Program-made: the position numbers and the translations under genes
Shown here: positions 29,909-60,451 of the stretch, one piece after another
Layout: the number at the start of each line of letters is the position of its first letter
Position numbering within the stretch: the first letter of the stretch is position 1
The notes under the pieces: generated by a model
Database searches by the model: none
Told to the model about the DNA's origin: nothing
Seen by the model: the letters and a program-made list of their open reading frames with translations, nothing else
Assembly: GCF_000150275.1 (NCBI RefSeq)
Contig: NW_002060960.1
Span: 1,006,469 to 1,070,468, forward strand
Length of the DNA stretch: 64,000 nt
Reading direction: 5' to 3'
DNA from: Trichoplax adhaerens
Taxonomy: Eukaryota > Animalia > Placozoa

Positions 29909-29958
29909 NNNNNNNNNNNNNNNNNNNNNNNNNNNNNNNNNNNNNNNNNNNNNNNNNN
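29909..29958. other. assembly gap (50 N)
   Basis: Run of N. Confidence 1.
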
Positions 29959-30914: not shown

Positions 30915-33491
30915 ATGGCTTCTAGTACAAGTGGCAAAATTCAAACAACCTGCGAAACGAATAGCCTATGGGAGAATAATGCTTTGTATGATTCGGATTA
31001 TAGCGAAATGAGCGATATCGATCTCAACTCACAGTATGTCGATATCTGGCATGAAAAAGAAGTCTATAACTACGGTTTACTCGACGATATGGCAGTAACA
31101 GATGTCGAAGACAACGATGAAAATAATTTTTATACTCCACGTGTGGAGCATACGTCGCCACTGCAATTTCTAGACTATACTAATATTTGGCAGCCGGCTA
31201 AAAATGCTCGACCAATGCCGCATAGTTTCAGAGGTGATCACGGCTTAACCGTAGATACTACTGGCTTCCATCCACGAGATTACTTTAGGCTATTTGTTAC
31301 CGAAGATTTGCTAACCTATTTTGTAGCAGAAACAAACTTGTTTGCTCTACAGTATCTGCGCGATTATCCGAAAACATCCAAGTTCGCTAAACTTCCGAGC
31401 TGGATGCCCACTAACGTAGCTGAAATGAAAAAGTTTCTTGGCTTGTTATTGTTGATGGGTATCATTCGAAAGCCATATATTAGCCATTACTGGTTTACTG
31501 ATCCTTTATATGATACACCAATCTTTCGATCGGTTATGACTTGTCATCGTTTTCAATTGCTTTTAAAATTTTTCCACCTAAACGATAATGATAACATGCC
31601 AGACAAGACTGATCCTAATCATGATCGCCTGTATAAAGTAAGACCACTAATAGATCATCTATTCGAATATTTTCAAGCAGTTTATGTCGTGGAACAGAAT
31701 TTGGCAATCGATGAATCTTTTCTTGTCTGGAAAAAAAGGCTCCAACTTCAAGATTTTCGCTTTAAACGTACCCGCTTCGGAATCAAACTAATTCGGCTCT
31801 GCGAATGCAGTACTGGATACACTTTTCGATTTAAGTTATACGTCAATGATAAAGATCCAACTGAGTGCTTAAAGCAAATACTACCTATTCATTCTGAGAA
31901 CTTTAATAAAGCTGAAAAGCTGGCTATATTTCTGTTGCTACCTCTACTAGACCAGGGCTACAATATTTACATGGACAATAACCGATTATCGCTCGATTTA
32001 TGTTCATTCCTGTACCGACGTAAAACTAATGCTTGTGGCATGCTAAATTCCAGCAAAATGCCTGAAATAATTCGCGGTGTAAGCACTGCATTTAAATCAA
32101 CCTCTGCCTATCGATCAGGCCCTATTCTTTGCTTAAAGCAAATGGATAGAATACCTCTCTATATGCTAACCACCATTCATGATGAGCAGATAGCTGAAGA
32201 ACTTAAAGAAAGTGACAAAGCATATGGTCAATATCGTCAAGGAAGGCCTTCGGCGATGCTTTGCTATATGAAAAATATGAGGAATATAGACAAGCAGGAT
32301 CAGGTAAGTAAGCATTCTTACGCATTATAGGATGGTGGTAATTATCATCTAGGTCTTAATGTAAAACATTTAATGCATCTTACCCACTGTCTATTGTAAA
32401 ATCTTAATCGATTATCCTATTAATGCGTGTTCCAGTCTAGCTTTGAATATCTTAGATTTAAGATCCAGAAGTGAAATGCAATATAATTAATTCAAGTCTG
32501 AATACAACGACAACAGTTAATTTTAATATGAAACTTGTTTAGAAGTCTACTGAGACACTAGATAAATAGGCAAATGAGCATATTACAAGAGTATAAGCAG
32601 AGTTTTAGAAAATTTATAGTAAATCTTTAACTGAAACATTCTTGAAATAGCCTTTGATACCGCTTATCCATTGCAATATTTACTCTTATACTTTAGAAAT
32701 ACCCGGCATTTTCATCATATACTTTAAAATTCAAATAATTCTGGGAAAGTTAAGGGTCCTCAAGAGTTGAAAATGGAATCGATTTATATTACCTGTATTC
32801 TGTAATCGGGGTTTATCGCTACTTTCAAATTGCGTTTATTTTTAAATCTCCTGTATTTTAAAATAAGTGAATCGCAGTCAGCTTAAATTACAATTTATAA
32901 CTAATAACCATATACTCATATTATCCCGGAATATTACACAACAGGTGTTAGTTATTTGTCATCTACTAACCTGCTGCAATTCATGATAGATGATAAAAGC
33001 GTGCAGTGCTACTAGAAGCACGTTCAAGTGGTATAAATCATTGGCATTATTCTTACTTCAAATCAGTTTACTAAATGCCTTTATAATTTATCGAAAAGAC
33101 CAACCAAAGTCACGCAAGTCGTTCTTGGAGTTTCAGCACGACGTAATTGATTTTTTATCAAAATAGGAACTGATATTGACATTGCTTACTACTATATATA
33201 TCAGCTTGGATTATATTTCATTTATAGGTTTTAAGTGATTACTTATTTGGAGACTTGGAGCCACAGCTTGCTAAGAGAGATACCGTTATCAGACTGAGTG
33301 GTAAACATTACTTAGTTAAATTCGAACGTAGGTCGAAATCAAAAAAGCCATATCCACTCTGCCAAGTTTGCCTGAAGAAAAAAATAACACTGGAAGTAAC
33401 TACCCTATGTCCTGTTTGTCCTAAAAAACCTGGCCTATGCATGGATCCTTGCTTTCTAAAATTTCATTCAAAACTAAAATATTGGATTTAA
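30915..33491 (+). CDS. piggyBac transposase-derived gene (PGBD4-like), copy 1, spliced, degenerate catalytic motif context
   Basis: Exons 30915-32303, 32990-33142, 33228-33491 (phase-0 introns, open frame). Acidic N-terminus; AIDES, YMDNN, MRNIDKQD, KWYKSL; C-terminal CxxC...CxxC...C...C...H cysteine-rich domain. Confidence 0.9.
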
Positions 33492-33979
33492 GTTGAACCA
33501 GAATGTTGCTTGGAACTCAAAGTTATAATTAATACAAGTATTTTAAAAATTGTTTTTTCTTGGTCTCCGATTCGATTCTTAACGGTATCCAGAGTTTTAT
33601 TGTTGTGAAATATCTTGATGAAAGAGCATTTAGAGTAACATTTCCGTGATTTATCATCGATAGTATTTCTAGTTTGATCTTGTAGCTGTACCTAAATTAT
33701 GTTAGTAAAAATTTAAATCTCTAAATTTGGTATAAAATTACATAGTTAAACGAATTTGATAGTGTCCATATTTTAGAGTGATATTAGGAAATGAATTTGG
33801 CAAACAGGCCACTATCTCCATCTAGTATAAGAATTTCGTATTATTTAAATGTATTCGTTGATGGAATGATGATTTTTAGAGAATCCGTTATTGTGTCGAT
33901 AAATTATTGCACATCTGACGAGCCATTTCTGAATACTTTTCGTATTGATTGTCAACAACAAAAAGTATTACATGCAGTA

Positions 33980-34087
33980 ATGAAAATTTTTCATCCCAAT
34001 TTGTATGTTAATAAGCGTAAAGCGTGCATATGTACATTAGCGATATTATTTGCAATTTTTGGAGTAATTTATACTTTCTGGGAACAG
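33980..34087 (+). CDS. orphan first-exon candidate encoding a signal-anchor
   Basis: MKIFHPNLYVNKRKACICTLAILFAIFGVIYTFWEQ followed by the strong phase-0 donor cag|gtatgt. No downstream exon identified. Confidence 0.35.
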
Positions 34088-35947
34088 GTATGTCGCAAAT
34101 ATCTAGAAAGATTTGTCTTTTGATAATAAACACCTTTTGCCCTCATTTCTTATAATGGGTTGCTATGTTAAGGTGAGCTCTTTGCCATGGCCTTTGTACT
34201 TAAAGCTAAGCTAGGTGATTAGGGCTATTAATAATTATTGTTTCAAGAAGATTTATGACAATCATTCACGTGAGTTTAACTACATTGCGGTGCTTTTATT
34301 AGAATGGTTAAAATTTCGCTTACTAGAGATATATCAAGAAAATCTATAACCTATTAAGGTGATCATACCCGATTTTGCTGTTTAGTTTGTTCTCAACAGT
34401 TTGCTTTACTAAATCCTGACTATAATTGCAAACTATATGTATAAATCCATCCATAATTTCTTTCAACTGATTCATACTAAATCATGCTAAATGAAATTGA
34501 TTAATTGATCTCATACAGCTTCTATCAGTTTCATTCTCTAATCGAATCGAAAATGGAAAATTAATGATATAACCGAAAATATTTCTCAGTTACTGTTTAT
34601 AATAACAACAATTGACTGCTGGCAGAGTAGAAAATGTAGCATTCAACATGTTTTGATAAATTTAGATACATAATAATGGGATAATTATTGTCATAAATTT
34701 TATTAAAAATATACCGTTAAAACCCCTGCCGGTAAGTGATATTGTAATATGCAACGCCGAGTAATACATTAATTTTTATAAATTATTCTGTTATGTATTG
34801 AAATATTCACATAATAAACTTTTCCATTTATATCCTTTTTCTCGACGGCTCCAGTATCTCGGTTCCCTCTGTGTTAGTCAATACTAAATACTATAAGGCC
34901 ATCAGCTTAGGCGGTTGCGGGTCTAATAAATTAATTTAGCCATTATTCATATACTATAGAATATCGTAACTCTATTAATTCCGTTATTATCTTCTGGCCA
35001 ATAAGAGCGCTGTAATGGCTTAAAGTTACGCCCATTCCTTAAGCGATTACTATTTCTGTATTTATAATGATATGAGCCTTCTTCCGTTAATATTTTAGTG
35101 TGACAATCATCTGACCTGACTACATTGTAGCTAAAGTACTTCTCTACTTAGTATACTAAAGTCTAGAAATTATGAACAAAATTGTCTCAGTTGGTGCTAA
35201 AAGTATTAAAGTACAGCCATTTAAAAGCATTTTCTAATCGATTGGTAATGATATCAACAGATGTAAAACATACCTTAATCTTTTGCTTAATTTCCTTATA
35301 AGATCGTTGCAAATTTTGAGACGGATCTATTGTAGTAAAATGTCATTCAAGATATTTGAGTCATGATTTTCTACTGCAAAATTAACGTACTTGTGCTGGT
35401 AAGTTATTCAAATAAGTACTACCAATCTTTTACTCTTAATATATAAATTAGATTTTTAATGACTAGTATTGAATGATGTTTATGCTATCATCCAAAATAG
35501 AATATTAACATTCAAGATTGAGTATTTCAGTTTTACGTTATAATAAGCTTGATCTAAAGTTTCATCAGTTAGTACTAAATATAAGCCCTTCACTAAATTA
35601 TAAGAGTCATAACACGATAGTATGGAGTAAAGGATTGATATTACATGCTTTAAGTAACTAACTGCAGTTTATACAGCCGTAATTAGAACTTAAACGATTT
35701 TACTATTTGCCAGTAGATGAAACTTTACGATAGTTGTTCCGGTGTATAAATATGAGTAGTTACAGCAGTTTTCTTAGCCACCGTTAGTGCAGCTATTAAA
35801 CAGACTATGTCGTAGGAAACGATCATAAGTCTATTTATGTTCTGTCTATTTAATTAATCGATGATTGCTAGTATACAGACAATATCAGTTATATAACGTA
35901 AAATACTTATGATCAAAAATACTTTAATATAATCTACTCTATGCACC

Positions 35948-38900
35948 ATGAAGGTAGTTTTTCTCTAGTCTTGATCCTTCTATCATTAAATAGCTATTAA
36001 CAATTTACTCTATTGAAGGCATAAAACGTGTAATGTGATTAACGCTACTCAAATTTTTTTATTACAGCCTTGGATTTAATGATGCCATAGCTTTAATAAA
36101 TTTCTAAATCAAATCTTCCTTGCAGGTCTCGGTTATATGCTTTATCCATTTAACAAGCAATACTAATATAGCCTTGAGTAAGTGCAACTTCAATCAAATA
36201 CTTTAATTTTGTCATTATTTTAAACCTTACCTACGTCAGATCATGATTGCAGTATTATGGCTTTAAAGCTCTTTATTCTTAATGTAATAATATAGCTACA
36301 AATTAGAAATCATTACATAAAACTGCATCTTTAGCTAGTATCTTTATATTACGCACACACAATTGGTAAAGGTTACAAATAGAAAGATCTCAGGAGGACC
36401 CGAAACCAATTATTATATCAGATTTTATTCACTAAATAAGCTAGTTTCTAGTAGCTAATTGAAAACAATATTTATTACATATAGAAAGCATTACGAAAGC
36501 GTTATGGGTTAAATTACTTTAGTAAAAGAACTATGGGATTACACAAACTTGTCATGCTATGAATTTCGCCTGTAATTTGTGTAACGTTCTTAGCCCGTAA
36601 CTTTATATTTGATCGCAGCATTGCCCATTCTAAAAATGATGTCTCTCCTTGATACTACATCCTTTAGCTAATTCGCAATCGTGCAATGGTAATCCTTGCA
36701 TGCAAGGTGTCTGTTATAATATTCAAGGCGCTGTAAAATGTTTGTGCTATTATGGATTTACGGGACAATCATGCCAAACAGGTAAGTGGCATTGTGCAAC
36801 TGAAATAGGGTATTTCGGCTTCATTAGATCTGAGCAAAATCTCCTTCTTGATAGGATAGCTTATATTCTACACGTGTACTAACTAGTAAAGATTTCCTTT
36901 AGTGTCTTTAATTTAGTTGAGACAATTGAATTTAAATGAGAAATATTTTGAAAGCCTGACTTAATTACAGCATAATTACAACATAAAGAAATAGTCGTTG
37001 ACGTCTACGAGAAGTTTAATTAAACCGAGAAAACAACTTACGCAGTTTTGGGTTTACTTATGTTGTTATGGAATCTAAATGCAACAATTTAGCAATATTT
37101 TCTAGAAAATTTTAGCTAATCTCAGCGTTACAGTCGTCGTATATCCGAATACTTTCTATTATCCCACCATTACTTTAATAGGATATGATGAATTACATTG
37201 ATCATTTAAGTGCACATAAACTGAGATGGCTTATCATATCTACAGCTTTAGACGGATCAAGTTACCCCTGTAGCAGCAACCCCTGCCATATTGGTAAATG
37301 TGTAACTGTTTACCAAACTTCTACCGGACTATCTTATATCTGCATGTGTCCAAACACCACTATAAATCAAGAATGCTATAATGCAGCAGCAAATAGACCA
37401 AGTAAGAAGCAGTTTGTTGTACAATCTACATGTCGAATCTACTATAAGCATTCTTTAATTTTCTATGCAGGTCTTTCAAGACCTTCCTATATCTAGTCAT
37501 ATTTTTTACTATCATAGATTTAATATTAATTGATGTAACATATTTTTAGCTCAAAGTTGTTCAGGAGGTTGTTTTAATAACCAATGTAAGAATAATGCTA
37601 TCTGCTATGGCTATTATGCGTATAATGCTTATTACTGTAAATGTCCGTACGGAACAACTGGAAAGAACTGTGAACAAACTTGTAAGTTGATACAAGAATT
37701 CTTTTATAGCAAAGAAAGCTGCAATTAAAATTTTCATTCCAGTAATTGCTAACACTAATAATAAGAGAAAGAATTTGCAATATAAAACAAAACTTTTATC
37801 AAAATTAGTTACCAAAAAAAATCAAAGAAATTTAAAAGAAATAGTAGTAAATTGAACGATATTGATTGCCAAATTCTCCTGCAGATATTCCTCCATGTTC
37901 GACCGTAAACTATTGTCAAAATAACGGAAATTGCACCACTAACTTCAATGGTCAAGAATATAAATGTTTATGTCAATACCCTTTCACTGGCAGAAGATGT
38001 GAAATCGGTAAGATTGAATTTTAAATAATATCAAGAAATTTACGCTGAAACTATGTGAATCGTAAGGACAAAATGAACTGAATTTTATTCTTCTATTAGA
38101 ATTAGCATGTGCTTCTTCACCATGCCAAAATAATAATTCATGTACAAACATAAACGATGGCCAGTCTTACCAATGTCACTGCAGCAACAAATTTACTGGA
38201 AAAAATTGTCAAATACGTAAGTAGTTATACAATGATAAAGTACGCCAGTGAACACTATAAACCTCTGATGTCATTGATATTATCATTCGGCAAATCCTGA
38301 TTCGCTATTGTAAAAAATCAAATTTTACAATGTTAGAGCCATATATTACAGTAATTAAACATTTCTTCATACCATAAATGAAAGATTTGTAAGAATACAA
38401 CAATTCCTTATTCAGTTACGTGTGTTATATTGATAGTATCTATTTTATGAATACTGTCGCTATAAAGCTGCTCTAGAAGAGTTCAAAATATTTCCTTGCA
38501 GTTTTGTAAATATTTCAGTATGTTCAATCATAATGTTTGTATATTTTATATCTCAAAAATGACATGATTGATTTATAGGTGACTATTGCAATTCCAATCC
38601 ATGCCAAAATAAAGGAATATGTTCTAATTCTCCCAATAACTATACTTGTCAGTGTGTATACCCTTTCAGAGGTTCCAGCTGTCAAATTCGTAAGTTTCCA
38701 TTACATAAGGGTCTTCTAATATCTAAGTAAAAGTGCTTCTGACGTTATCCTGATTTTTACCAGTTTTAATGACGGTCAAACTGATAGCTATCAATTTGAT
38801 CATAATTATCTCTAATGAAACTATTAGATTTCTTACATTTTCTTCATAACCATAAACTGCTTTATTTGCTCCATCGATGAAAGTCAAATGTTCTTAGTTT

Positions 38901-41900
38901 ATAATAGCAGCCATTGTAACATATTCTCGACTGGTAGCATAAACATAAATTATAATATTATGACCATACAGGCAATCCACAAGTAGGAGATGTTCGCCTA
39001 TTAACCGAAAATGAAACGAATGCTGGTGAGCTGCAAGTATACATTAACAAAGATTGGGGATATGTTTGCTTTAATGATGTCTTGGCAGGAAATCTAGCTG
39101 ATGTTGTTTGTCACCAGTTGGGTTATAACAGAGCAGAATACTTTACTGAAGTACAAAATCCAGGCCCATACTTACTTCCGTCTTTACAATGTAATACTAC
39201 ACTATCTACCTTGTTTGAGTGTAATGGAAATATTGATTTTGGAACAAGTTTTAACTGTTCTACATCCGCTAGATACTTTATAAGATGTGAAGGTAAGAAT
39301 TTTCTTTCCGTAATGATAGCACGTTCATTTTTTTAATTCATTAACTATAACCAGGCTCATCCTACAATGATGGCATTTATTTATAAATATTCGAACTTAT
39401 TGCTCACATCGAAGTATTTGCGCTATTACTTTAACCTTACGACACCTTTACTTTCTTGCCATAGCTGCATCAAATCACTGTGTCCCAAGTGGAAATAATA
39501 TTTGTACACAGCAAAATAAAATTTGCAAGGCCTTAAACTCTGGCTTCGTATGCACGTGTCGGGAAGGTTATACTGGTGTGAATTGTAAAACTCCAATCAG
39601 TACGTTAAATACTCATAGCAATATGATGTAGCTTGTATGAATCTTCATTTCATATAATTCATTTGTAAAGAAACTGTAATTATATATTACGCAAATATTT
39701 CAGGTTCTATTAGACACATTATCGAATTAGTATTGTCACATTAATTTTTTATAGCTGCTAATGATTACGATTGTAAACTCCTTAGAAAGAGACTCTGGTA
39801 TACCTTGCACTATGCTCAAAATTTGCTTCATAAAATTGAGCTAATAATATTCTATGTGAGCTTTGAATTAGATATAAAATTAAGTCATGCAATATCATTT
39901 TTATTACAGTATCACCATGGAAAGATGGAACAATTCGCATATACGACTATGAGCATGAAATTAAATCTACAGAATTAAGTTATCGAGCTGTTGGAGCCTT
40001 AGAGATTTTTCACTTAGGTGTTTGGGGTAGCATAAGCGCTAATAATCCATCGGTTGTTGCTGACATTGCATGTCGTCAATTAGGATATACTGTTGGCTAT
40101 CAGCGACATCATATAGAGAATTCTAGTCCATCCCCGTTCATAAAGTATTGGATCAATAATATTTATTGTAAAGGAGCAGAAACTACCATTCGACAATGCT
40201 TTTTTCAATTCGGAACAAATACGACGATGCCTAAGGCCCGTTACGACGTAAAATGTTTTAGTAAGTTACGGACGCACACAAATTGAAATGATATTCGTCA
40301 ATTATTTCGATTATAAGCAAGCTGTATTTTAAATTTCCTTTGGCCTATAATTCTGTATGTAGATGTAACCTGTAATCCAAATACTTGCCAAAATAATGCT
40401 ACATGTACTAGTACAAAGCTGGTAGTAAATGGTTTAGTTTCTGAAAAAGATGAATGTAAATGTACTTTTGGATACTATGGTGATGTTTGCCAACATATTG
40501 ATTTTTGTGCGACGCTGAAACCATGTCAAAATCAAGGTCAATGCGCTCTAGTAGCCTTCACATCTTACGATTGTCGATGTCCAAATTACTTTTTCGGAAG
40601 GCATTGCCAAATTGGTAATTAGCTTTTAACTATTTATTGGAATGTCAATAAGATCATTATTTACAGATTTTCGCTACAATGAAGTTAATTTTATGCTAAG
40701 ACTATTTATAACATTAACAGGAAAATTGTCCAATGGATCTTCACTTATCATCAACGGTAGTATTAATAGCAATGCAATCAATTTCGGACGAATCGATGTA
40801 GTTATTGGAAGGAGCGAAATAGTACCATTATGTAGCAATAAATTTACTATAAACGATGCTCATGTAATTTGCCAACATGCTGGATATGCAGGAGCTGTTA
40901 GCAAAATTGATGGTAGTATTTTTGGAAAAGATAAAGTTAAATACGGTTTGGCTAATATGAAATGTACTGGTTTTGAAAAATCTCTTTCCCAATGTTCGGG
41001 ATACAATTCCTATGTTACGAACTGTAATAACAGCTATGCAGGAGTAATTTGCTCAAGTAAGCAACATTCTATATCTTTTACGGAATATTTTAATGACGGT
41101 AGATCATGTTATAAGAAGTTAAAAACGCCATAGTTTTTAATCATATATCATCTATGTCCATTAGTGTATATCATACCGAAACGCAAAAGATACCGTTTAT
41201 TGTAAAAGTGTCTATGTTACTAATAATTGCCATCCGAATTAAATGGTATCTTACAATTTAATTTTATCATTTTATAAACAGCTAATAAGCCTTGCACATC
41301 AAATCCTTGCCAAAATGGTGGTACCTGTATAAATATGTTTTTTGGATTTCAATGCAAATGCGGTATTAATTACTTTGGAAGAACATGTGTTAGTGGTAAG
41401 TTAATTTCATTTGTATAAGCTACCATTCGACACGATGGCAACACTATATTATTTCTTTTATTAATTAATTAATTTTATGCGATCTATATGTTTTGCATCA
41501 TCATTTATGTTGATACTGCCGAAAATTCGCTAAAACTTTATAGCGAAACTACTTCTTGAAAAGAAGAGATAATCCTTAGTATCATATTCAATTTCGAATT
41601 ATATTGCTATTGCAGTTTCAGAAGCTTCTGGGTCAATAAGACTTGTCGGACAGTCAGAAAATAGTATGCAAGGACGACCTCAAATATTTATCAATAACTT
41701 ATGGATCAATATTTGTACGCCAATCAATGCTTATCATAATATGCGTGCTATCTGTTCGAAAATGGGCTACATCTTTGCTACAGCTAGTAAAGCGGACACA
41801 CAAAATTATCGAGGTTCTGCATCCTACGAATTGCAATGCAACGGAAAGGAGGCAGATATTAAAGAATGCAAGTATACTTTGGTTAAAAATTCTACGCATA

Positions 41901-44900
41901 CCTATTGCAAGCAAGACATCTTAATTACATGCACTGGTAAGCCTATGTTAAAGAAAGAAATGAAATCTGCCACCTACAAAAATAGGACGATGCAAATAAT
42001 CAATCTTTAATTCAAACTTTCATACAATAATCTACCATATATTTTTACTTTCTGTCTATAAATGAATGTTGCTTGATATTGGAATACCATTGAATGCCAT
42101 TTTTTTTCATTTGTTACCTTAGGATATTCTAGAGATGGCGTAATAAGATTTATGGGAAATCCTGGCTTAGGCAGCTATTTCCAAATTTATTACAACGGAA
42201 TGTGGGGAAGATACTGCGGTGAAGGCAAAGAAATAGAATCAGTGCTACTAATGGCATGCGGAGTTGCGGGATATGAAACTTTTGAAAAGTATGATTTGGA
42301 TTCTATTGATCCTAAAGAACACAATTATGGCCCCATGCTTCTATGGAATGCCTTCTGTAGTACTAATGCTACCGATTTGAACCAGTGCAATAGTCTAGGA
42401 TGGTACAATATTCCAGATTCTTGCAAAGCTAGCAATAAAACAGTCTACTTGACATGCAAAAGTAAGTCTATTAAATAAATTTCATCAGATGTCTCGCTTA
42501 ATGCGAGTAAAGATCTGACGAGGCTCATTAAATGCCTCTTTTGGCGTTAGAAAGATCCAACTATGCTGATAAATTCACATTTTGTAGATTATAGCATTAC
42601 AAGATTAGCTTCCATATGTAAATCTACTATACGTGCATATAGTCTATGGAGGTTTCTTAATCAATAGCTTGAAAAATTGTCAATTTTAATTCCATCATTT
42701 AATGAAGATAAACAAGAATGCTCCTTCCTACATCAACAAAACTGCTTCTATCAAAATAAACATTGTGTAGCTATGAACAGGCGTAGATTTTGTGTGTGCT
42801 CGCCAGGCTACACGGGCGAAAATTGCGAAACACTCTACAGTAAGAATCTATAGCTATTCCTTAAAATTAACTCTAAACATAGATGAAAATAAGCCAACTT
42901 TTAAATACATTTAATAGTGAAATACTAAAATCAGTTAGACTTAATGGTATAATATTCCATTTCTAGTTCAACCCGTCAGTGGCACTATCAAATTTGATGT
43001 TACACAGATTTCCTTTATAACTGATTATAAAGGAGAAATTTTAATCTTTCATAACGGTGTTTGGGGTGGATTTTGTTATGATAATTTCACGAAGCAAGTA
43101 GGGGAAGTTATATGCCGACAACTCGGTTTCCATCGCTATGTTTGGCATACTTGCTGCTTCGGAGGAAGAGAGAGCTTTGCTAAAGTCTGGATAACTGGTA
43201 TGCGCTGTTCTGGTCAAGAAAGTAATATTACACAATGCGATATTTCCTATGGTCCAGATACTTCCAAATGTCGTGGTGCAACAATTTTAACATGCGAAAG
43301 TATGTTCATAAGAAATATTTTTATATTATATCCAATTTGTTAGTATAGAGTAACATTTAATATATTAAGCAAAGCAGTGGCATCTTAGCAACTTGAATCT
43401 ATACACAATTTTAGACCTATACAAATTACAGTGCTCATAACTAAGAAGTATTACAATTTTGAGACAAAATATCATATAGATTTTACTAGTATGGAGTTGC
43501 AGATATTATATTTAGTAAAGTAAATGGCATCTTATGAATCTGCCATCGGTCACTAATTATACATGAGCGACTTATAATGCTCATAACTAAGATTAATTTC
43601 AATTTTTAAGAAAAAAATCCGAAGGATTTTAGCTGTATTCATGGAGAGGTTGTCCATAGTGATCAAGGACGACGCTGTGATTGCGATCCTGGATACTTTG
43701 GCAAAAATTGCGAGTATATGGCTTTGTGTCATTGGAAGCCATGTAAGAATAGTGGCACATGCATCGATAAGTTTAGAAATGTTTCCGATATATACAAAGC
43801 AACCTACTATGAGTGCCACTGCAGCAATCCATATTATGGAAAGCAATGTCATCTAGGTACTGCAAATGTAAATACTGCAACTAGAGGATAAATAAGATTT
43901 ATTGCTATCACTTTTTCGTGATATATTACGTTTACCACCCTATACGAAGTTGTAGAGTTATCTCTAACACTAAATTCTCGACAACGTTGGGTTTCAAAGC
44001 AGTGTTAGTAATGCTAGTAGAATATCGCAAACACCTGAAGAAGTAGATCATCAATTTAAATTCTATTTGGCCATTTTCAATTAAGGTCCTGCAAAAGATG
44101 GCTCTATCAACACTGTAATACCCTATTTTCAACCCGAACAGTATTATGCGGGGCGAATTAAAATTTACTTACAAGGTATATGGTACAGCTTTTGCAGGCA
44201 GCATTTTTCACTCAATGCAGCCAATGTGATTTGCCAGCAGCAAGGCTACGGTAAGGCAATCTCATTCTCGACTAATTATCCAATTGGCCAACCTGACGCC
44301 TTGATGACGAATCTGCGTTGTACTGGCTACGAAAGTAGCATATTGGAATGTTTATATAAATTAAATCCGATCAGCCAAAACGCTGCTTGCTTACCTAAAG
44401 ATTATGTTGGAATTAACTGTTCCACAAGTATGTGGCATTAGCTTAATCTTTGTTTCTTTTACAAATTTTTCGTTATAATAGCTTGTCAATTTATATAGAT
44501 ATATAGCAACAGCTCTATGCACTGTATATTCCGTCGACCATCATGCCTGATTTATAAAACATATACATACTTCAACTGAAATATCTTTAATTTCATGTAT
44601 TGCGATACTTTACGTATTTCTTTGATTCCACGATTGTGTAATAATTGGGCCTTCCGTTTTTATATGATATTATCAGCCTATGATAAATGTCGTGGAATAC
44701 CTTGCCAAAATGGAGCTACCTGCCGAACATTCTGGTTTGGTTTTAAGTGCCAATGCCCACAGTATTACACCGGACTCTTATGCGAAACCTATATAGGTAG
44801 ACCTTTGCTCTATTTATATATTACGAAAATATTTCTCAATATTATAGCAGAGCTACCATAGTCATGTATAGTTTAGTAATTAACAGCGAGTGAAATTCTA

Positions 44901-47900
44901 GATGCTCTGTCATTCTAAACTTGCCTAATTAAGTGTTAATAATAAATACTCAATGTAGGACCTGCTTTGGAGGGAGATTTGAGACTAATAAACGGAGCTA
45001 CATTAAACGAAGGAAGGATCGAAATCTTTCACAATATGAAATGGAGTACTGTATGTGGTAATACGATTACTAAACAAGAAGGCAAAGCTTTGTGTCATCA
45101 GCTAAACTTAATTTTCGAAGGATTTACTTATCATGCCGTATTTGGTAAAGGGCATGCCAGTGTTCCAATATTATCTTTAAATTGTAGCAACGATAAAACG
45201 AAAATTAAAAATTGTAATTTAAGCCCCATATCCTCTGCTGCTGGATGCAATCATAACGATGACGTTGGTATTATCTGTATAAGTAAGTCCTTGAGCTACT
45301 TAATATCTTTTTATACAGCAAATTATAACAGTCGAAATTCAAATTGGATGTGGGTCGCTAGTATTTGTTTGGTAGATTAAATTTCATTGAGATTTGTGCA
45401 TCATTGTAAATAGGACATGAAGAACTTATATTTACTTTCTAATTAATCTATAAGCAAAGGCCTGTGTTCCAAATCCTTGCAGAAATGGAGCCGTTTGCTA
45501 TCCTAACATATTAGATTATTACTGTCACTGTGTCAATGGTTATTCAGGAAAAAATTGCTCTGAAGGTAGTTCGGCTCTACATTAGCAACCATGAAGTTAT
45601 TACAAAATTAAACTAGAAAATTCATAATATATTACTTACCAATTTAAACAATTATTAGCTGCTGAAGGAACGCTACGCTTAGTAAATGGTACAGGCTTTA
45701 ACAGTGGCAACTTGGAAATATACCACGATAATGTATGGGGTGCTATTTGCAGTCGAGATTTTGCCGATGCTAGTGGCCTGTCGGTCTGCCAAGAACTAGG
45801 GTTCATTAACGAGGAAAATTTCTATTGCTGTTCAGAATTTGGCCAACATAACGGTACATTTTGGTTACATAACATCAGATGTAATGATGAGGATAAGAAA
45901 TTGATAGATTGCAAGTTTGATTCGTATAATACAATGTGCAGTCCTAGTCAAGTTGTGGGGCTTCGCTGTCGATGTAAGTTACTGTGTCTAGCAACTACGT
46001 ATTTTGCCATCCATATCTATTGACCATGATAACTAATTAAGAAACCTATCGGAATAACGCTTGATAATTGGACTCTCTTACCTTGCTAGATGGATTTTGT
46101 GATAGTTTCCCTTGTCAAAATGGAGGACACTGTGAGTACATTTATCATTTGGGCATACGTAAAGGAACATGCGACTGTCGTAGGGGATTTACGGGCAAAT
46201 TATGTGAAAAAAGTAAGTTCTATCAATTTTTAGGACATCAGTGATCGTGATAGTAATTAAAACAGGGTACCTGGATGTACCTGGAATATAAGATGGCTAC
46301 CAGCTAATTTTTAGAACAAGATCATTTAAATTCAGCTTCAAATTATTTCAATAGCATTATAATTGAGTTTACTTGAGATTTTAAGGTCAAATGGATTATC
46401 GGTGTATTTCTTTTCTAGTTGATCATCCAAAACAAATAACGTGTGCCGACAATCCCTGTGGACCTGGATCGACATGTTTAGATTTAGCGCTGGGTTATAA
46501 GTGCTACTGCTCGGATAGATACTACGGAAAGAATTGCAAAAAAGGTTAGCAATGTCCATAGCCTTAAATCAATGTAGCAGAATAACTAGAATTGAATTCT
46601 AACTCCTTTTGCATTCACTTAAAATTTTTACTTTGAGTACAGTGAATTAATATCTGTAGCTATCGTAGCAAAATACGTAACGGGAATAATCCATTGCATA
46701 GCTATCTAAATGTATGACAGTATTTTGATAGAGAAGTTAACGCTGCTAATTGCCTGGTATGGGCAATAAATTTATCATCTTCATGTAGAAATTATCAACG
46801 GTATCGTCCGGTTTTATTCGCCATATGGTGTGGATAACATCAGATCAGGAACGGTGCAGATTTATTTCAACGGAACATGGGGCACAATATGCAGTAAATC
46901 AATTTTCAGCAGGACATCTGCTCGAGTTATATGCAAAATGTTAAATTATGAAGTGGTCCAAGATGTCAAAACGAATTCGTTCTTCGGTTCAGCACCGGGT
47001 AGAATATTATTCTGTAAGCATTAATTATATCTCTGTTATTTGGAAATACGACTACTTTTAACAAACATTCTTTAATCTAAACTGCAGCTATCGTAAACGA
47101 TAGGGTTAAAAGATATTAATAGTTAATCAATCTTATCACTTTGGCTTTCTATGCTAACGATTTTACTTTTGGGATAAAGCTAATGTTCAATGTACTGGCA
47201 ATGAAACTTCCATGTTGGACTGTCAGTTAGCCTCAATTATTCCTAAAGACTGTAATTCCAACACGCTGGTTGGAGTTACGTGCCAAAGTATACCAACCCT
47301 TTCGCTTACTTTGAATTAACACAAACTGTATAACTATTTGAGCTTATTCTTCTTGACATCATTTAGAGAATCCTTGTTCTACATCACCAACGCCTTGTGG
47401 ACTCAATGGCTTCTGCCGAATGATAGCAACTAAACCATTTTATAAGTGTCGCTGTAATTCAGGGCAAGCAGGCTACAACTGCGATCGAGGTAGATCTAGA
47501 TTTCAGCAATCTTTAACTAATCATTTTTAGGTCTACCTAGCTGCTTCCAGACCTGTTAAATTAAACCTTCAATATTAGGGAATAGAACAGCTACCAAGTC
47601 AATTTTTTCTTGTCGATTTAGAATTCAATGCTTGCGATAGACATCCATGTGCAACACAAGCTGGAGGTCGAGCAGTCTGTAAATTTGTTAATGGATTTGC
47701 TACCTGTCAATGTCCTGAAGATTATAGCGGATACAACTGTTTATTTTGTAAGTTTGCATCTTCAATTCTTCAATATTAAGGAATTTCATCTGATGCCGTC
47801 AAAAAATTCATTTAACAACCTATTCCTTTTAAAAGAAAATATTTAATTTGCGTTCTTTTCTCTTTATTCTAATAAAAGTAAAATGATTTCGTTATATTTC

Positions 47901-50900
47901 AGATTCAAGACTGATAGGGATTCGTCTGGTAGCTGGTAATAAATATAATATAGGAACCGTAGAAATTTACAAGGGCAATAAATGGAGTAGAATTTGCTCG
48001 CAAGATTGGCAGTTCAGCCATGCACGTGTGGCATGCCGTCAGCTTGGATTTATGGATGCACAACTTCGAACCCAATGCTGCAGTAATCTGGAAGATCCAT
48101 TAATATCCAAAGTCATGAGCGGGATTAACTGCACAGGGAATGAGCCTAATCTCAATGATTGTAGCCAAAACCACGTAGAAAGTAACATTTCATCCTGCTC
48201 TAAAAGTGCAGCAATATATTGCATAGGTACACCCTTTACATTGTAAGTTTAAAAATGAATCCTATCAATAAAATAGTAATATTAATACTTTTTTAATAAC
48301 GAACAGATAGTCCACTGGATTCCAATTTGAGCAACTTAACTTCACTATCAGCTAGGTAAGAGCTTGGTAGAATCATTTGTTGAGTATGAAAAATTTAAAT
48401 TTGCTATAGTATGGTACTCTAATACGTTTAAGAATTAATTGAACAATTTCGTGAGATTGTAAGTTAGATCATTAGCACTGATCATCATTTATGCGCCCTT
48501 CTAGCTTTCTAATACTCTTGTAATACTTTACCAAATTGCTATAAACTTAACTTTTGTTAACTATTATGTTGGTCTCCAAATCCACGAATTTGAAATTTAG
48601 CTACAAGTGCGAATCCGGTAAGATTATACTTTCACCTACGTAGTGATAGTGTTTACTTATGATACAGCTTCATAATACTTTTGCTGTATAATATATAACA
48701 GAATAAGGGCTACTTATTTGAAAATCATTTAATAGCAAGAAGTAATTAATATCAACTGATTTGCATTTTTAGATATAAATCCTTGCTTAAGTTCACCATG
48801 CGGGCGAGTTAGTGCAACTTGTGTCAACGTACTGAAACCCTTCAGAGGATATGCCTGTCTATGCGAGAACGGATATTGGAATGGATATCAATGTGTTAAC
48901 GGTAGTGTAAATTCTTCATAAACTACGTCTTTTAATTTTCAATTTGCCGTGGCTAAATGTTCTGCACAATCATTAACCATCCACGAAGGAAGTATCCATA
49001 TGATCTCTGCAACACATGTTTGATACACTTATTCACTTTTTTCATTTCAACAGATGTAGTTTTAACTACTGTTACCCTGAAAGCAAGTACAAATACAGTA
49101 GCAATTGGTCAAAGGTTATTATTAGAATGTGTTGCATACGCTATTCCATTGCCAAAAATATCATGGCTCAAAGATGGCCAAATAATAATCAATTCCTGGA
49201 TTAAAGTCATAAAAAATGATACAGTATCGGTTAAAAATGGCTCCAGGTCAACCTTAGAAATTAAATCTATAACGCTCGGCGATAACGGCAATTATTCTTG
49301 CATTGCCAAAGATGAAGTCTTTGATAGGATCGTTCAGAGCAACCAACAAGCGATAGGTCATTCTATTTTAAAATATTACAAACTTGTTGTAATTTCTATT
49401 AAATGAAAGGAAATTTTGCTTTTCCAAATGGTACCGCTATAGTCAGTGACTATTAAACAGGTTTTCTTCAATTTCGAAATTTAGGCTTTACTTGTTCTCC
49501 CGCATACTGTTCTAATAGAGGAAATTGCACGATTACTGGCGGAAAATTTGTTTGCAGGTATACATCACTTAAACAATCCGATAGCAAAAGAGACCTATCA
49601 ATCAGATACCGTAGATTAAACAGAGTTTACAAGAAAAAAATGTGCAATATAATCAATTTAATCGTATCTATTTTACATTCCGTTCTTTTACAGTAATTGC
49701 ACCTTCGGCTATGGAGGATCCTATTGTAATACATTGCTACCTTGTAAGTAGTGAAATAGAAGTAAAGATATTACTGCATTTCTAGTGCATGAAAGATGCC
49801 TATATCCTCGATGTGTCTATAAGCCTAACCTACTATTCTTATTTAATATCAAAGCGCAAGTTTTATTAAAGATGAAACTTTATAATTTAGTAAAAATTTA
49901 AAATTGTAAATATATTTATTGCAGTTAATTTGTTATTTTAAAAGCATCGATACAGACTTATATGTTTGAGGGTAGTTCTTGCTTGAATTAATAAAGTTAG
50001 CCATAGTTACTCTAGACATTAAATTTATTCATTATTTATTTTAACACATTATGCAGATGTGCCTTTAAGAAGTGCTCAACTTCAAACTAATGCAATATTG
50101 TATCGCCAATATGAATCTATCATCATACAATGCTCCATTATTGCTTATCCCGTGCCGATTGTGCTTTGGATGAAAAATAATTCTGTGATTCGACAGGAAA
50201 ATAACGTATCAATGTCTAAAATGACCAATGACAATAATTACTACGAGTTAAAATCAACATTAATCATTCGTAGCGCTTCTATTTTGGATGCTGGTAGTTA
50301 TGCATGTCATGTAAAAGATACTCATTTTAATAAAACTATAAAAAGCGACAGCATTAATATCGGTAAGAATGCTTTCACTTATTTTAATATTAAAATACAA
50401 TATATAGAAATTATCGTAATAATCGCAGTTTAAATGAATTTCTATCATTATGGTAATAGCAGGACTGTAAATAGTATTTGCATTTACTCTCCGTAGATGT
50501 TGGCATAACCCTTGAATCCGTTCAAATTCAAGCCAACACTTCCAATTATTTCTTTGGTTTGCCACTTAGCATTGAGTGCAAAGCCAGGTCATATCCGCCA
50601 TCCAACGTGACGTGGATCAAAAATAATCTTCCAGTAAAACCGAGAAATAATTCCTATATCATCATCGCGAATGATCCTGCTAAATATTTGGCTACATCAA
50701 TCCTATTAATAAATCAACTATCTACGGAAGATAATGGAAAATACCAGTGTATTGCCAACGATACCTTTAATCATAATCTGCTGGAGACTACACCATGGAT
50801 TATAAGTACTTATTTGTACAGATAAATTGATAGTCATGTTTGTTGCACAATCGATATTGTATAATTAAAATTTCAAACATCTGGTAGTGCTAACTCAAAA

Positions 50901-54867: not shown

Positions 54868-55174
54868 ATGGAAGATGGTAAAGAGATTGATGAAACAGTT
54901 GAAGTTAATTATAAACGAATCTTGCATGAACTTCAAATCGAAGAAATTATGTTTGACTAGAGAGCAAATCAAGTCTTGTCAGATTCGCAAGTCCAAAACT
55001 TGAGGAACTCAAATAAAGATAAAGAGAGAATATATGAATTTATCAGCTTCCTGAAATAGAAAAAGAAAGCGGACCTTTATAATTTTTGTCAGGCTTTAAT
55101 CCATCATGAAGAATTCTCTATAAGAGAATTGGTTGAAGACTTGAAAATTCAAGCTGATGAAGCCTTTCAAAAGG
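54868..55174 (+). pseudogene. CARD-domain exon with two in-frame TAG stops
   Basis: MEDGKEIDETVEVNYKRILHELQIEEIMFD*RANQVLSDSQVQNLRNSNKDKERIYEFISFLK*KKKADLYNFCQALIHHEEFSIRELVEDL, ending at a GT donor. Six-helix CARD hydrophobic pattern; stops at 54958 and 55057. Confidence 0.7.
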
Positions 55175-57092
55175 GTATCAATCAATTATATACAATATGT
55201 GATTAGTTGTGGAAGACTTTGCTTTTATTACGAAAGCCACATATTATAGTATTCTAAAGAGCGAATTTGCTTAAAAAATATAAGTTACTAGATAAAGTAT
55301 TGATGCAGTTTTGGTTGGCAGTAATATACTGTAGAGACTTGATACTACATCATTTATGTTTATCACAAGTATTTTGTTAGTGCATTGTGAACATTTATTT
55401 TAGTCGTATTAAGTAGGTTATTAAAGGAGACGGTACGTGTAAATGATAAAACTAGTATATTGAGTATTATAATTATTATTGTTTCTTTCAGGTGACTACG
55501 GTTAACACATTAGCTGTAAATAAGGATTCATTAGAATTCCTTGAATTGATTGGTTTTGTAATCTAACACTGTTAACTAACTCGTTTATCTATTTGACTTA
55601 TACTAATTTCTGTTTTGAAGCCTCATAGTAAGCCTATGAGGAAAGTAACGAATATTTGCTTTCATTAATAGTGTGCATGAAGGTTGTAGTGCCACAACTA
55701 TAAAAGGACATGGCAGATTACTGCAATTTTAATCTTATTTTGTTTAATTTCATTAATCAACAACCCTAATAAACTATAGTATTTTTTTATCCCTTCGGAG
55801 TGATCTCGCTGTGAGACCGTCAAGCACCCTGATCCCAACCAACTGACCGTTGAAGAAGGCAGTTGTTTACGGTAGAATTGGGCAAATTCTACGTATACTA
55901 AAGTTGCATTATGCTTACTTGAATATACTACTTAGCTAAGTTTCCATACTTTCAAGTTACTTTATTCTAAATTTCGTAAGGGTCTAATAAAGGAAAAGCC
56001 AAATATTTTGTTTTTAGCAGAAGTAAATACGGCTTCTCTAGTAGCATCTCAATATCCGAAAAGCCGGCAATCAGTAATACTTGAAAAATCGCAAAATTCA
56101 GCCGCAAAAGAAACATCGTCAGGATTGACAGACAGCTGAAATCCATCCTCTTATGATGAGTATTTAAGTTTTTAATTTTTAACATTTACCCGTAATATAC
56201 CATGTAGATTTGAACTAAATCTCAGCTTCTGGCCAGAAGTCACAAAGATGCGATTGTTAACTTGCCTGAAGAATCTGAATTACCACCATTTGCAATGGAT
56301 GAATACTGGCCCAGTCGATAGTTTCTCATAAGGATCAACAACAATATTTGCTTCTATGATCGATGCCACTTGAACATACGCAGAACATTCAAGTTTCCCG
56401 ATCGTTCTTGTGGCGTGCGGCATTTTAAGTTCAATGCTATCAATCATTTATTCTATGTGCAAACGATTTGAAAACGGGTCAAAATATTATTTTATTAACA
56501 GTGCACAGGGAAAGCTAATTTTGATTTTGTTTCATACTACTTTGCAATTCTTTTTATTAGTTTTGGTTATAATGAATTTTGCTGCGTATATTCTTTTATT
56601 ACATAAATATTTCTATAGTTTCTTTCAGAAAAAATTCTGTTTCTTAGTGAAATATTATGATTTATCTATTTAAAACGTAAAATTTATTCCTCTTTCAAGT
56701 GAATGGATCAGTAATTTGTAGTGCCGTAGGTAATAAAAACTTGATAGAATTTCTACCAATTTTGAATATATGCTCTTTCAAATTAGATCTAGTATTTTGA
56801 CATTACGAGTTTGCTTAAATATGTAAATTAAGTAACACTACTGCCCTTCATTTAAATGTTAATAGCATGTAGCTTGGCGTTCTTCCGAAATTAATTATCA
56901 GCAAGTTCATGAATTTTCAGAACCATCAGTGGGGGTTGATTTTTAATTTTACTAGATATACTTAAAGAATATATCTGACCTTCAGTATCATGGGCTAATT
57001 TATCTTCATCAATTTTAAAGGAGTATTATTTTTCCATCTAAAATTTCTTTTGCTGTCCTTTTCATTGTTCATCTCAAATAAAGTAAAGAAGC

Positions 57093-57317
57093 AATTTACC
57101 ATGTAACATGGTTTAATTAATTTGCGTTTAATGTCTTAATTACGTTGCGATTTCTAATTAGGCTTTTCTATGTAAAGGTTTAATTATAAATGATATTATT
57201 GAAACAATTACCATGGAGCCTGGCTTAATTGATCTGTATTTAATACTTTAATTATGTTGCGATTTCTAGCTCGTCTTTAATATGTAAAGGTATAATTACA
57301 AATGATATTACCTTAAC
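57093..57317 (+). repeat. ~115-bp diverged tandem duplication upstream of piggyBac-derived copy 2
   Basis: Two units sharing ttaccatg, gttgcgatttcta, tatgtaaaggt, aaatgatatta. Confidence 0.75.
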
Positions 57318-57523
57318 TAAACCAGCTTTAGACAGCCATAATACTATCCTATAATATTTACCATAATTAGCACGATAATAAATCATTAAGCGAAATATTC
57401 GTCAATGCTAGCATTTAGTCACTGAGTGCATAAGAGTAAGATTGACAGAAAATTTAGTCTACCTTTACGGCTATTAAGTGAAAGATTGGAAATCATTCAA
57501 AATCGGCGGTTTGAACCAAAAAA

Positions 57524-60451
57524 ATGGAGAATTATAACTCTAGTGGTAGTGAATTGATCGAGGAAAAGCAGGATGATCCATCCACAACCGCAGTGGATGA
57601 GTCCGCTGATGAAATGGAGATTCCACCATTAGAAGAGGTAAGCGATAACGAAAATGCTGATTTAAAAACATCGATAGACTTATCGAAACAGCCATTAGAA
57701 GATACATATCAGTGGCAGGAAAGCAAGCCAGAAAAAACTTACATGCATCCATTCGTGGGTAAACCAGGTATCAATGTTGATACTACTAATTTTAAGCCGA
57801 TCGATTATTATCAACTCTTTCTTACACCAGAATTACTACAACATATCGTATTAGAAACTAATAGTTATGCTTCAGCATTTCTGCAAAGTAGCTCTAGCTT
57901 AGAGTGCCATCGAAAGCAATGGTCACCAACTAATGCTGGGGAAATTAAGAAATTGCTTGGAATCATTTTTCTAATGGGGTTAATTCATATGCCAAACATT
58001 GGACACTACTGGTCTACTGATTACTTGTTTAGAATGGAGATATTTCGTTCCATTATGCCTCGTGGTCGTTATATACTGTTACAGAAATTTTTCCATTTAA
58101 ATAATAACGACAAGATGCCCGACGTAAAGGGTCCTAATCGCGATGCTCTGTATAAACTTCGTCCTCTAATAGACTATTTAATGTGTCGTTTTCAACAAGT
58201 CTATACAGTAGAACAAAACGTTGCCGTTGACGAATCACTATTACTATGGAAAGGAAAGTTACATTTTCGCCAATTTATACCCTTAAAACGCGCAAGATTT
58301 GGTATTAAAATGTTTTGCCTGTGCGAGAGCAAGACAGGATATACCTTTCGCTTTCGAGTCTACACTGGTCAAGATGATCCAACAACAGGAATGGACTTGG
58401 AGTTACCACCCGAAGTTCGTGATGCCGGTAAAGCAGAAAAAGTAGTTGTCTATTTGTCCTTGCCATTACTGGATCAAGGTTATAACATCTACATGGATAA
58501 TTGGTATAGTTCAGTTCCTCTCTATTCCTATCTTTACGAACGAAGAACGAATGCTTGTGGCACAGTAAGAGCAGATAGAGTACCGGCTAGTATTCGAGAG
58601 AAAGATGTTGCCTTTGGCAAGAGTAGCACATTTTGGCTAGGGCCTTTAATGTGTGTTAAATTTAATGATCGAAGCATGGTTTATATGTTAAGCACACTGG
58701 ATAATGATGGAATTACTCAAGTGACAGTGAGTGGAGGCCAAGGAGTTCGAGGAAAAGTGAACAAGGGAAAGCCTACATGTGTCGTTCACTATAATAAGTT
58801 TATGGGAGGAGTAGATTTACGAGATTCTGTAAGCCAACTAAATTTTGTATCGAACCATTAAGCCATTAATTAAGGCACCTTTAGTCCTGTCCATTTTATA
58901 TGTTATTTTTTATTAATAGAGGCTAGGCACTAAAGCACATAGAAACAATATACTGAATTATGAATTCTATTTATTTTTTGTAACCATTGGATAGTAAATT
59001 GAATCAGCATGAACTAGCGGTAGATTGAATAGCTTTCAATTTTACCTCCAGGTCATTAAAAACTATGCTGCTACCAGGAAAACAATAAAGTGGTATAAAA
59101 AATTAGCGATCCATCTTTTGCAGATTGCACTGCATAATGCATTTATACTCTATCGTAAAGACCATCCTCAAAGTAAAGTGGGATTTATGGGCTTTACAAC
59201 GGAGGTATAGAAAGGTCATTGGATTGCTACTTATTCCTTAATGAACTATGACGGTAATTTAAATACCTTTCATCATAACTTGGATGATATTTTCCTAGGT
59301 TATATCAGAGTTATTATCTGTAGATAAAACTACAGATGTATCCAAAAGGTTAGCAAGTGTATGTGAAGAAAGTCAAAGGTTAACAGACACTCATAATGTG
59401 GGAAACATGGAGCATGAGAGTAAGAACGAGATCACTCATACTCTCACTAATCTGGGATCTCAAGCAAGCAAAATGGTAGGTTAGCTTGATCAGCGAGAGA
59501 TCGTATCTGTGCTCGTATGTCATGAATATTTTTCACCTTCTAGTTGGATACGCCATCAGTAACAACTTTGTAGGAGTATTTTAAGTTGATCAGCGAGAAA
59601 TAGTTCTTTGACACATGAGTATTTTTCGCTTTAACTTTGGATTAGATTGATCACTAGAAACTATATCGGTACTCATATGTCATGAGTACTTTTTAGCGTT
59701 GAATTTGGATGAGACTAATCAATAACAACCTATTCTGATACTGATATGTCATGAGTATTTTCCACCATAGATTGAAATTACATCGATCAAGGAGAAACTG
59801 TGTTGTTAATAACCCGTCATGAATAGTTTCCGCCTTTGATTGCATGAAGAAAGCAGTTTTACCAAATATCATTACAGTGGCATTGTAGAAGCACTATCAG
59901 CAATGTTTAAATTTCATGACAAGATGTTGACAATATTACTATTTCAGAATAAATAATTACAACACTGTACTGAACAACAAAGTCAAATCTTTACAGTATC
60001 TCAAGTAGATTAAATTTGTAATACCCTAATAAATCACTGCAATTTCATAATTTTAAAAGCAACCAAAAAGGTTTACCCAGTTGCATTGGTACTCATGATT
60101 TCTACAGTCTTGTTCTTTCAAAGATTGGAATGGTTACTCTAGAATGGTAACGGGTAGCTAACTTAAAACACTTGTACTTGCATTAAGGCTATGAAAAATG
60201 GACAATTAGTGGATAGAATGAATGCAAAATCCAAGTTACCTACAACATGTCTTACAGAAATGCATTTTCCACAAAAGCTCAAATCGAGAGGCCATCAGAA
60301 AGATTCTAGGCTTCGCTGTAGCATGTGCTACCATAAAGGTCGAAGAAGAATGGTCACTACAACTTGCAAAACGTGTCCTAATCGACCAGGCCTTTGCATT
60401 GATCCTTGCTTCGAGGAATATCATCTTCAATTAATGAATTGGAAACGCTAA
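57524..60451 (+). CDS. piggyBac transposase-derived gene (PGBD4-like), copy 2, spliced, canonical DDD motifs
   Basis: Exons 57524-58828, 59052-59204, 59299-59475, 60188-60451 (phase-0 introns). VDES, FRQFIPLKRARFGIK, MDNWYSS, CGTVRADR, YNKFMGGVD, KWYKKL and an intact cysteine-rich domain. Confidence 0.9.
59480..59845. repeat. degenerate ~60-bp minisatellite in intron 3 of piggyBac-derived copy 2
   Basis: About 5-6 units with ttgatca...tgtcatgagtattttt...ttggat. Confidence 0.7.

Follow-up and report, generated by a model that had tools for sequence, protein, structure and literature searches.

Two plus-strand genes lying 24 kb apart in a 64,000-nucleotide stretch of the Trichoplax adhaerens genome (NW_002060960.1, positions 1,006,469 to 1,070,468; hereafter the window) both encode piggyBac-type transposases and are referred to here as copy 1 and copy 2. 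Together with a third gene on contig C1402, they probably belong to a family of host genes, three or more in number, that arose from one piggyBac transposase by loss of the transposon ends, gain of introns, and duplication. In the proposed order of events, a piggyBac transposase would have lost its ends, the end-less gene would have acquired two spliceosomal introns, and the intron-bearing gene would then have duplicated to give the three or more present members. The case for domestication is good in copy 1 and in the C1402 gene, whereas in copy 2 it is plausible, if less proven; judged from their sequences, all three genes are probably used by the animal. An earlier note on this DNA had proposed an old, duplicated, domesticated pair. 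Single-copy and end-less genes, shared introns, orthologs, and constraint on copy 1 all support that proposal in substance, except that the pair becomes a family of at least three because the C1402 gene has the same two introns.

Gene Structure and Domain Content

The exons and introns of the three genes are as follows, in window coordinates for copies 1 and 2 and in locus coordinates for the C1402 gene (C1402:1330823-1333288, minus strand; locus L015 4824-7289).

Copy 1
30915-32303, plus strand: exon 1, 463 codons, encoding an acidic N-terminus and the greater part of the piggyBac DDE domain; donor GTAAGT at 32304
32304-32989, plus strand: intron 1, 686 nt, phase 0, GT..AG, read from sequence
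32990-33142, plus strand: exon 2, 153 nt, end of the DDE/dimerization region with a KWYK..LLQ..NAF motif
33143-33227, plus strand: intron 2, 85 nt, phase 0, GT..AG
33228-33491, plus strand: exon 3, including the stop codon, encoding a linker and the cysteine-rich zinc finger (zf-Tnp_2, E 2e-6)

Copy 2
57524-58828, plus strand: exon 1, 435 codons, acidic N-terminus and DDE domain, then GTAAGC
59052-59204, plus strand: exon 2, 153 nt, phase-0 end
59299-59475, plus strand: exon 3, 59 codons, present in the Trichoplax sp. H2 model P0001
59476-60187, plus strand: intron 3, placed from the H2 protein P0001
60188-60451, plus strand: exon 4 with stop, RL..HFP motif and cysteine-rich domain (zf-Tnp_2, E 2e-7), 100% identical to P0001

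C1402 gene
L015 7289-5976, minus strand: exon 1, ending before GTTAGT at the same place as in copies 1 and 2
L015 5823-5671, minus strand: exon 2, 153 nt
L015 5069-4824, minus strand: exon 3, zinc finger

In both window genes exon 1 stops in phase 0 a few codons past the third catalytic Asp, and the introns of copy 1 as well as introns 1 and 2 of copy 2, as read from the sequence, are all phase 0 and GT-AG. Intron 1 just past the third-Asp motif, a 153-nt exon 2, and a phase-0 intron 2 are common to copy 1, copy 2, and the C1402 gene. The earlier note had described the two common phase-0 introns and the 153-nt exon 2 correctly, as the splice sites attest; its three-exon model of copy 2 was incomplete, with an extra exon (59299-59475) and a third intron missed. 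Copy 2 thus has four exons, since P0001 joins exon 2 to 59299-59475, and its last exon begins at 60188 rather than at the ATG at 60191. The opening residues of this extra exon 3, VISELLSVD, have their homologous counterpart at the beginning of exon 3 in copy 1; the remainder, to which Pfam assigned nothing, is a linker specific to copy 2. Two short repeats lie close to the coding exons of copy 2: a 68-nt repeat (2.2 copies) within intron 3 at 59614-59761 and a 112-nt repeat (2 copies) 200-430 nt upstream of the start codon at 57088-57310.

Protein searches with the spliced genes were run exon by exon. Pfam assigned DDE_Tnp_1_7 (PF13843) to exon 1 of copy 1 (E 2e-59), exon 1 of copy 2 (E 2e-76), and the C1402 gene (E 6.5e-58), and zf-Tnp_2 (PF13842) to the last exons of copies 1 and 2; the latter domain is also present in the C1402 gene. 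The open frames, acidic N-terminus, and C-terminal cysteine-rich domain noted earlier for both window genes are confirmed. The Cys/His columns that supply the zinc ligands are all kept in the three genes. Sequence divergence among the paralogs is considerable, with the exon-1 proteins of copies 1 and 2 being 44% identical and the three paralogs 34-45% identical to one another.

Catalytic Residues

Along the full catalytic domain, both window proteins align to piggyBat 9c0f, a transposase of solved structure (copy 1, E 1e-45; copy 2, E 5e-42). The Asp codons at 31710, 31974, and 32289 in copy 1 (residues 266/354/459) and at 58229, 58496, and 58814 in copy 2 (residues 236/325/431) fall in the catalytic columns of 9c0f, so that all six coordinates given in the earlier note are correct and the DDD triad is intact in copy 2 and in Trichoplax copy 1. 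Copy 2 surrounds these residues with the motifs DNWYSS, GTVR, and GGVD. The alignment likewise confirms the erosion noted earlier in copy 1, where the motifs read DNNRLS, GMLN, and RNID and the RQFIPLK loop is one residue shorter. The C1402 protein has His at the first catalytic Asp and Ser at the third (H, D, S), which makes the most degenerate member of the family a gene on a different contig from the window.

The extent of degeneration was gauged over the 95 alignment columns in which conservation among 41 other family members reaches 85% or more. Of these, 81 are retained in copy 2, 75 in copy 1, 69-70 in the orthologs of copy 1 (described below), and 54-55 in the C1402 gene and its ortholog; the reference rows, which are mobile-type relatives, average 89 with a minimum of 74. 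The division into one canonical and one degenerate gene made in the earlier note therefore survives in that copy 2 is closer to canonical, but the members form a gradient (81, 75, 55 of 95) rather than two classes. On this sequence comparison, the Trichoplax family seems to run from triad-keeping to clearly inactive members, and copy 2, given its DDD triad and most of the family-conserved residues, may still cut DNA.

Genome-Wide Copy Number and Transposon Ends

Copy number was assessed by a six-frame search of the whole genome assembly (105.6 Mb, 1414 contigs, ∼32% G+C). The genome holds three intact intron-bearing genes, an allelic contig, one truncated duplicate, and a few short broken pieces. 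The allelic contig, C1156, came up in the six-frame search as a 100% match to copy 2 and is redundant, being collinear with window 56772-59670, flanks included, at 99.4% identity; the truncated duplicate lies on C1372. A few small contigs carry piggyBac pieces that are short, intronless, and mostly broken. The genome search returned no group of similar mobile copies or short derivatives, only the C1156 and C1372 segments, and no copy-2-like relics or short derivatives turned up in it. The genome-wide check called for earlier thus gave no dispersed, near-identical copies with terminal inverted repeats.

Two further observations concern these contigs. A 59-nt tandem repeat occurs just downstream of copy 2 (window 61169-61820, 11 copies in the window), and the corresponding array on C1156 (1-2332) is more than three times longer. 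On C1409 (locus L017 4916-6295, plus strand), an open frame of 459 codons, which shares only ∼21% identity with copy 2, is uninterrupted at the places of the family introns and has an unrecognizable first Asp motif; it may be a separate, older piggyBac-derived gene.

Transposon ends were sought by comparing every TTAA within 6 kb upstream (4.5 kb at C1402) with every downstream TTAA and scoring the inverted similarity of the adjoining 16 nt. TTAA-flanked inverted-repeat ends amounted to 2, 1, and 0 weak pairs at the three loci, the level seen at random places in the window, and the three loci contained no TTAACCY/RGGTTAA pair. Run as a positive control on metagenome contigs, the same scan recovered TTAA-CCC... 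ends 2.4-2.9 kb apart in L026, L036, and L046. The absence of TTAA-CCC...GGG-TTAA ends noted earlier is accordingly upheld by background-level pairs in a scan that works on these three contigs. The closest relatives among metagenome sequences, with 42-56% identity in the DDE domain, are all uninterrupted at both intron places. The three Trichoplax genes are immobile and single-copy.

Orthologs and Phylogeny

A protein search identified two proteins, P0121 and P0159, whose alignment to copy 1 exon 1 spans 448 residues, contains two small gaps, and shows 67% identity. Both begin with the same MAS, and homology is lost right past DKQDQ with a Val (GTN) codon, an exit from the frame that is as expected if the same donor site as in copy 1 were present. 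Both carry Asn at the first and second catalytic Asp (N, N, D). A third protein, P0165, is 65% identical to the C1402 gene and shares its losses of the first and third Asp as well as its exon end. The simplest reading is that P0121, P0159, and P0165 come from another placozoan lineage. For copy 2, P0001 from Trichoplax sp. H2 (632 aa) shows four differences from the window protein and is 99.4% identical overall, 99.5% in exon 1. The metagenome scan yielded ordinary intronless elements only and no further placozoan-type ortholog. Several open reading frames (ORFs) lose homology past the D..DQ motif, and these may be frameshifts rather than signs of an intron 1 older than placozoans, since Val also comes after DQ in uninterrupted relatives.

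In the best tree, eight rows (the three paralogs, P0001, the C1372 duplicate, and the three orthologs) form one clade. Copy 1 groups with the C1402 gene at a Shimodaira–Hasegawa-like approximate likelihood ratio test (SH-aLRT) value of 95. Holding all eight rows together is not rejected and gives a marginally better likelihood (approximately unbiased test, p-AU 0.49).

Constraint on Copy 1 and the C1402 Gene

A natural comparison for copy 1 is provided by its segmental duplicate of ∼5 kb at C1372:11740-16615 (loci L016 and L018), in which window 28191-32768 is joined to 40714-41673 at ∼94% identity (blastn). From the copy 1 locus the duplicate takes in exon 1, some of intron 1, and the flank upstream; exons 2 and 3 are absent, window 29464-30196 is missing, and the joined segment 40714-41673 is one SRCR exon. 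When read in the copy 1 frame, exon 1 of the duplicate contains three 1-nt indels (frameshifts) and six stops, whereas copy 1 contains none. P0121, used as the outgroup, places 18 amino-acid or stop changes on the C1372 duplicate against 4 on copy 1 (binomial p 0.004) and leaves another 9 undecided. Between the two, nonsynonymous divergence (dN, 0.0245) is lower than synonymous divergence (dS, 0.10) and than the ∼6% divergence of the non-coding flank. Because the duplicate took all 9 disruptions and 18 of the 22 polarized changes, copy 1 is constrained when measured against this decayed copy of itself.

P0122, a protein from H2, was considered as an ortholog of copy 1 and ruled out: it carries the derived residues of C1372 and the adjoining SRCR exon. 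These shared features identify it as a chimeric model of the relic, made of transposase pieces and an SRCR exon and annotated in H2 as a hypothetical protein.

Open frames add to this evidence. Stops make up 7.4% of codons in this DNA, and the chance of an open 463-codon frame is ∼4e-16; the frames of copy 1 and the C1402 gene have stayed open through amino-acid divergence of about one third. Because they are open in at least two lineages despite replacement of catalytic Asp residues, copy 1 and the C1402 gene appear to be retained for a role other than cleavage. Their sequences suggest that the role is probably one of scaffolding or of binding DNA, exerted by the zinc finger and the dimerization region; more generally, noncatalytic members would most likely act via the old DNA-binding and dimerization parts of the transposase.

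These data bear directly on the reading that all three genes are neutral leftovers of old insertions, open by chance and functionless, which was already disfavored and which we regard as highly improbable. Eroded motifs in copy 1 would fit it, as would the lack of spliced reads in sequencing runs that are not established as RNA and the filing of Trichoplax piggyBac pieces as dead elements in a transposable element (TE) survey (PMC2871265). Such leftovers would nonetheless have had to keep frames of 435-463 codons open at this frequency of stops, together with splice sites and zinc ligands in all three genes, and two of them, copy 1 and the C1402 gene, have orthologs that are intact at 65-67% identity; the unconstrained C1372 copy, by comparison, gathered its 9 disruptions at only 6% divergence.

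The Case of Copy 2

Over 1635 coding bases, copy 2 and the allelic contig C1156 differ by 3 nonsynonymous and 3 synonymous changes; over 1264 non-coding bases they differ by 7 substitutions and 3 indels. This comparison of the H1/H2 type is compatible with constraint, but the changes are too few to carry statistical weight. The variants of copy 2 on C1156 are those of the H2 protein (M74T, G139R, and N>D in exon 3), and the sharing of these three variants with P0001 makes it seem that the assembled individual holds an H2-like copy 2 allele.

The principal rival explanation concerns copy 2 only. It takes this gene to be the last copy of a piggyBac element with introns, either recently stranded and so far undecayed or still able to move, with an intact triad reflecting past selection for transposition; domestication would then apply to copy 1 and the C1402 gene alone. 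The retained DDD and 81 of 95 family-conserved residues are what such an element would show; the sequences closest to it are ordinary elements that have TTAA-CCC ends, the searches gave no ortholog beyond Trichoplax, and the few H1/H2 changes do not demonstrate constraint. Set against this, copy 2 is single-copy apart from C1156, is without inverted repeats or TTAA-CCC ends, and left no relics or short derivatives detectable in the genome search. Two of its intron positions are common with paralogs that predate the split from the other organism, it has a lineage-specific extra exon and intron, and no active TE has been reported in the Trichoplax genome (PMC2871265). Weighing both sides, we consider a stranded copy 2 unlikely and retain descent of all three genes from one domesticated transposase as the favored reading. 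As no ortholog is found outside Trichoplax, the case for long-term retention of copy 2 rests on tree topology and the shared introns.

Several points weigh against this common descent as a family of host genes. Neither the protein search nor the metagenome scan returned an ortholog of copy 2 above 51% identity outside Trichoplax, and the branch joining copy 2 to the other two paralogs has an SH-aLRT of only 88-89. The Trichoplax TE survey recorded no TE-like expressed sequence tags (PMC2871265). Finally, sequencing runs were sought with copy 2 exon 1, and the four that were mapped on copy 1 gave zero splice joints; of the runs containing the sequence, none is recorded as RNA except one with a very small share, and the run data are counted neither for nor against expression.

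The runs do inform on coverage and allelic variation. X8 and X17 cover the introns as well and are DNA-like, and X18 covers only the interior of copy 1 exon 1. Within that exon, the X2 and X8 contigs reach ∼1.6 to 2 times the depth of the stretch found only in copy 1, with copy 1 and the C1372 duplicate merged; variants such as 31048 G>A are unassignable because of this merging. The copy-1-specific 3′ part (32720-34002) is matched at 99.4% by a run that probably derives from Trichoplax sp. H2, with one synonymous change in exon 3 at 33389.

Flanking Genes

Between copy 1 and copy 2 (window 40642-50825, plus strand), exons for at least five SRCR domains are followed by three Ig domains; this run is presumably one large receptor-type gene. 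Upstream of copy 1, a 240-codon open frame (window 22556-23278, plus strand) has a sub-cutoff match to an OTT_1508-like deaminase domain (E 0.002).

Comparison with Known Domesticated piggyBac Genes

Domesticated piggyBac genes are known from vertebrates (PGBD1-5) and from ciliates (PiggyMac and its partners). In Trichoplax, a 2010 survey recorded 16 piggyBac matches, filed among the inactive elements, and reported complete ORFs only for hAT and mariner (PMC2871265). Placozoan piggyBac-derived genes go unmentioned in a survey of piggyBac domestication (PMC5381638), in the PGBD5 paper (PMC3902484), and in a catalog of transposon-derived factors that includes Trichoplax (PMC10027918).

Mobile Uribo1/PGBD4-like elements (L026, L036, and L046) resemble the Trichoplax genes in domain order, DDE identity (42-56%), and zinc-finger pattern. 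The difference is that each mobile element consists of a single uninterrupted ORF between TTAA and CCC... inverted ends 2.4-2.9 kb apart, while the Trichoplax genes have introns and no ends.

PGBD5 is similar to the Trichoplax genes in being single-copy, immobile, and end-less, with introns inside the transposase domain (PMC3902484, PMC5381638), and in being conserved across lineages with catalytic Asp residues partly replaced. It nevertheless belongs to another branch of the superfamily, and a PGBD5-like match to the Trichoplax genes reached only 31% identity (E 7e-35); the nearest named relatives in the protein search were PGBD4-like and Uribo1, not chordate PGBD5. The Trichoplax genes also have only two or three introns and keep the zinc finger that PGBD5 lacks (Table 1 of PMC5381638), and here one domestication seems to have given several paralogs.

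Paramecium PiggyMac and its five PgmL proteins offer a ciliate precedent in which one active and several inactive domesticated piggyBac paralogs work together (PMC6143343). As in the Trichoplax family, the paralogs contain introns, one has the triad, and others have catalytic losses, and the sequence pattern of a triad-keeping copy 2 with degenerate paralogs fits an arrangement of this type. The two differ in that the ciliate system is linked to programmed DNA elimination, a process not known to occur in placozoans, and in that copy 1 is still DDD in Trichoplax itself. By analogy with PiggyMac and PgmL, the three proteins could cooperate as one catalytic subunit with inactive partners, a suggestion that we hold to be possible yet doubtful.

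The competing view is that the genes are domesticated and act separately, for example by binding DNA as regulators or by repressing piggyBac elements that enter the genome, with no joint nuclease complex. Two members lose catalytic residues and yet keep the zinc finger, and the paralogs are strongly diverged at 34-45% identity, both of which accord with separate action. The vertebrate PGBD1-5 genes also act singly. Nothing counts against this view directly, although the ciliate precedent of one active and several inactive paralogs shows that cooperation is possible (PMC6143343). Separate action is a serious possibility that still stops short of being probable.

Significance

The most far-reaching form of the cooperative model is a placozoan machine resembling PiggyMac, in which copy 2 would serve as the nuclease and copy 1 and the C1402 protein as catalytically dispensable partners, acting in programmed DNA cleavage or rearrangement or in genome defense. 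Drawn from the ciliate analogy, this model appears quite improbable; if true, it would be the first multi-paralog domesticated piggyBac system in an animal. The favored reading has consequences of its own, namely a conserved, intron-bearing family derived from a seemingly single domestication in an animal that ranks among the simplest and carries hardly any active transposons in its genome. Such a family would offer a tractable case for learning what noncatalytic descendants of transposases are kept for, and would allow a test of whether the arrangement of one active and several inactive paralogs arose outside ciliates.

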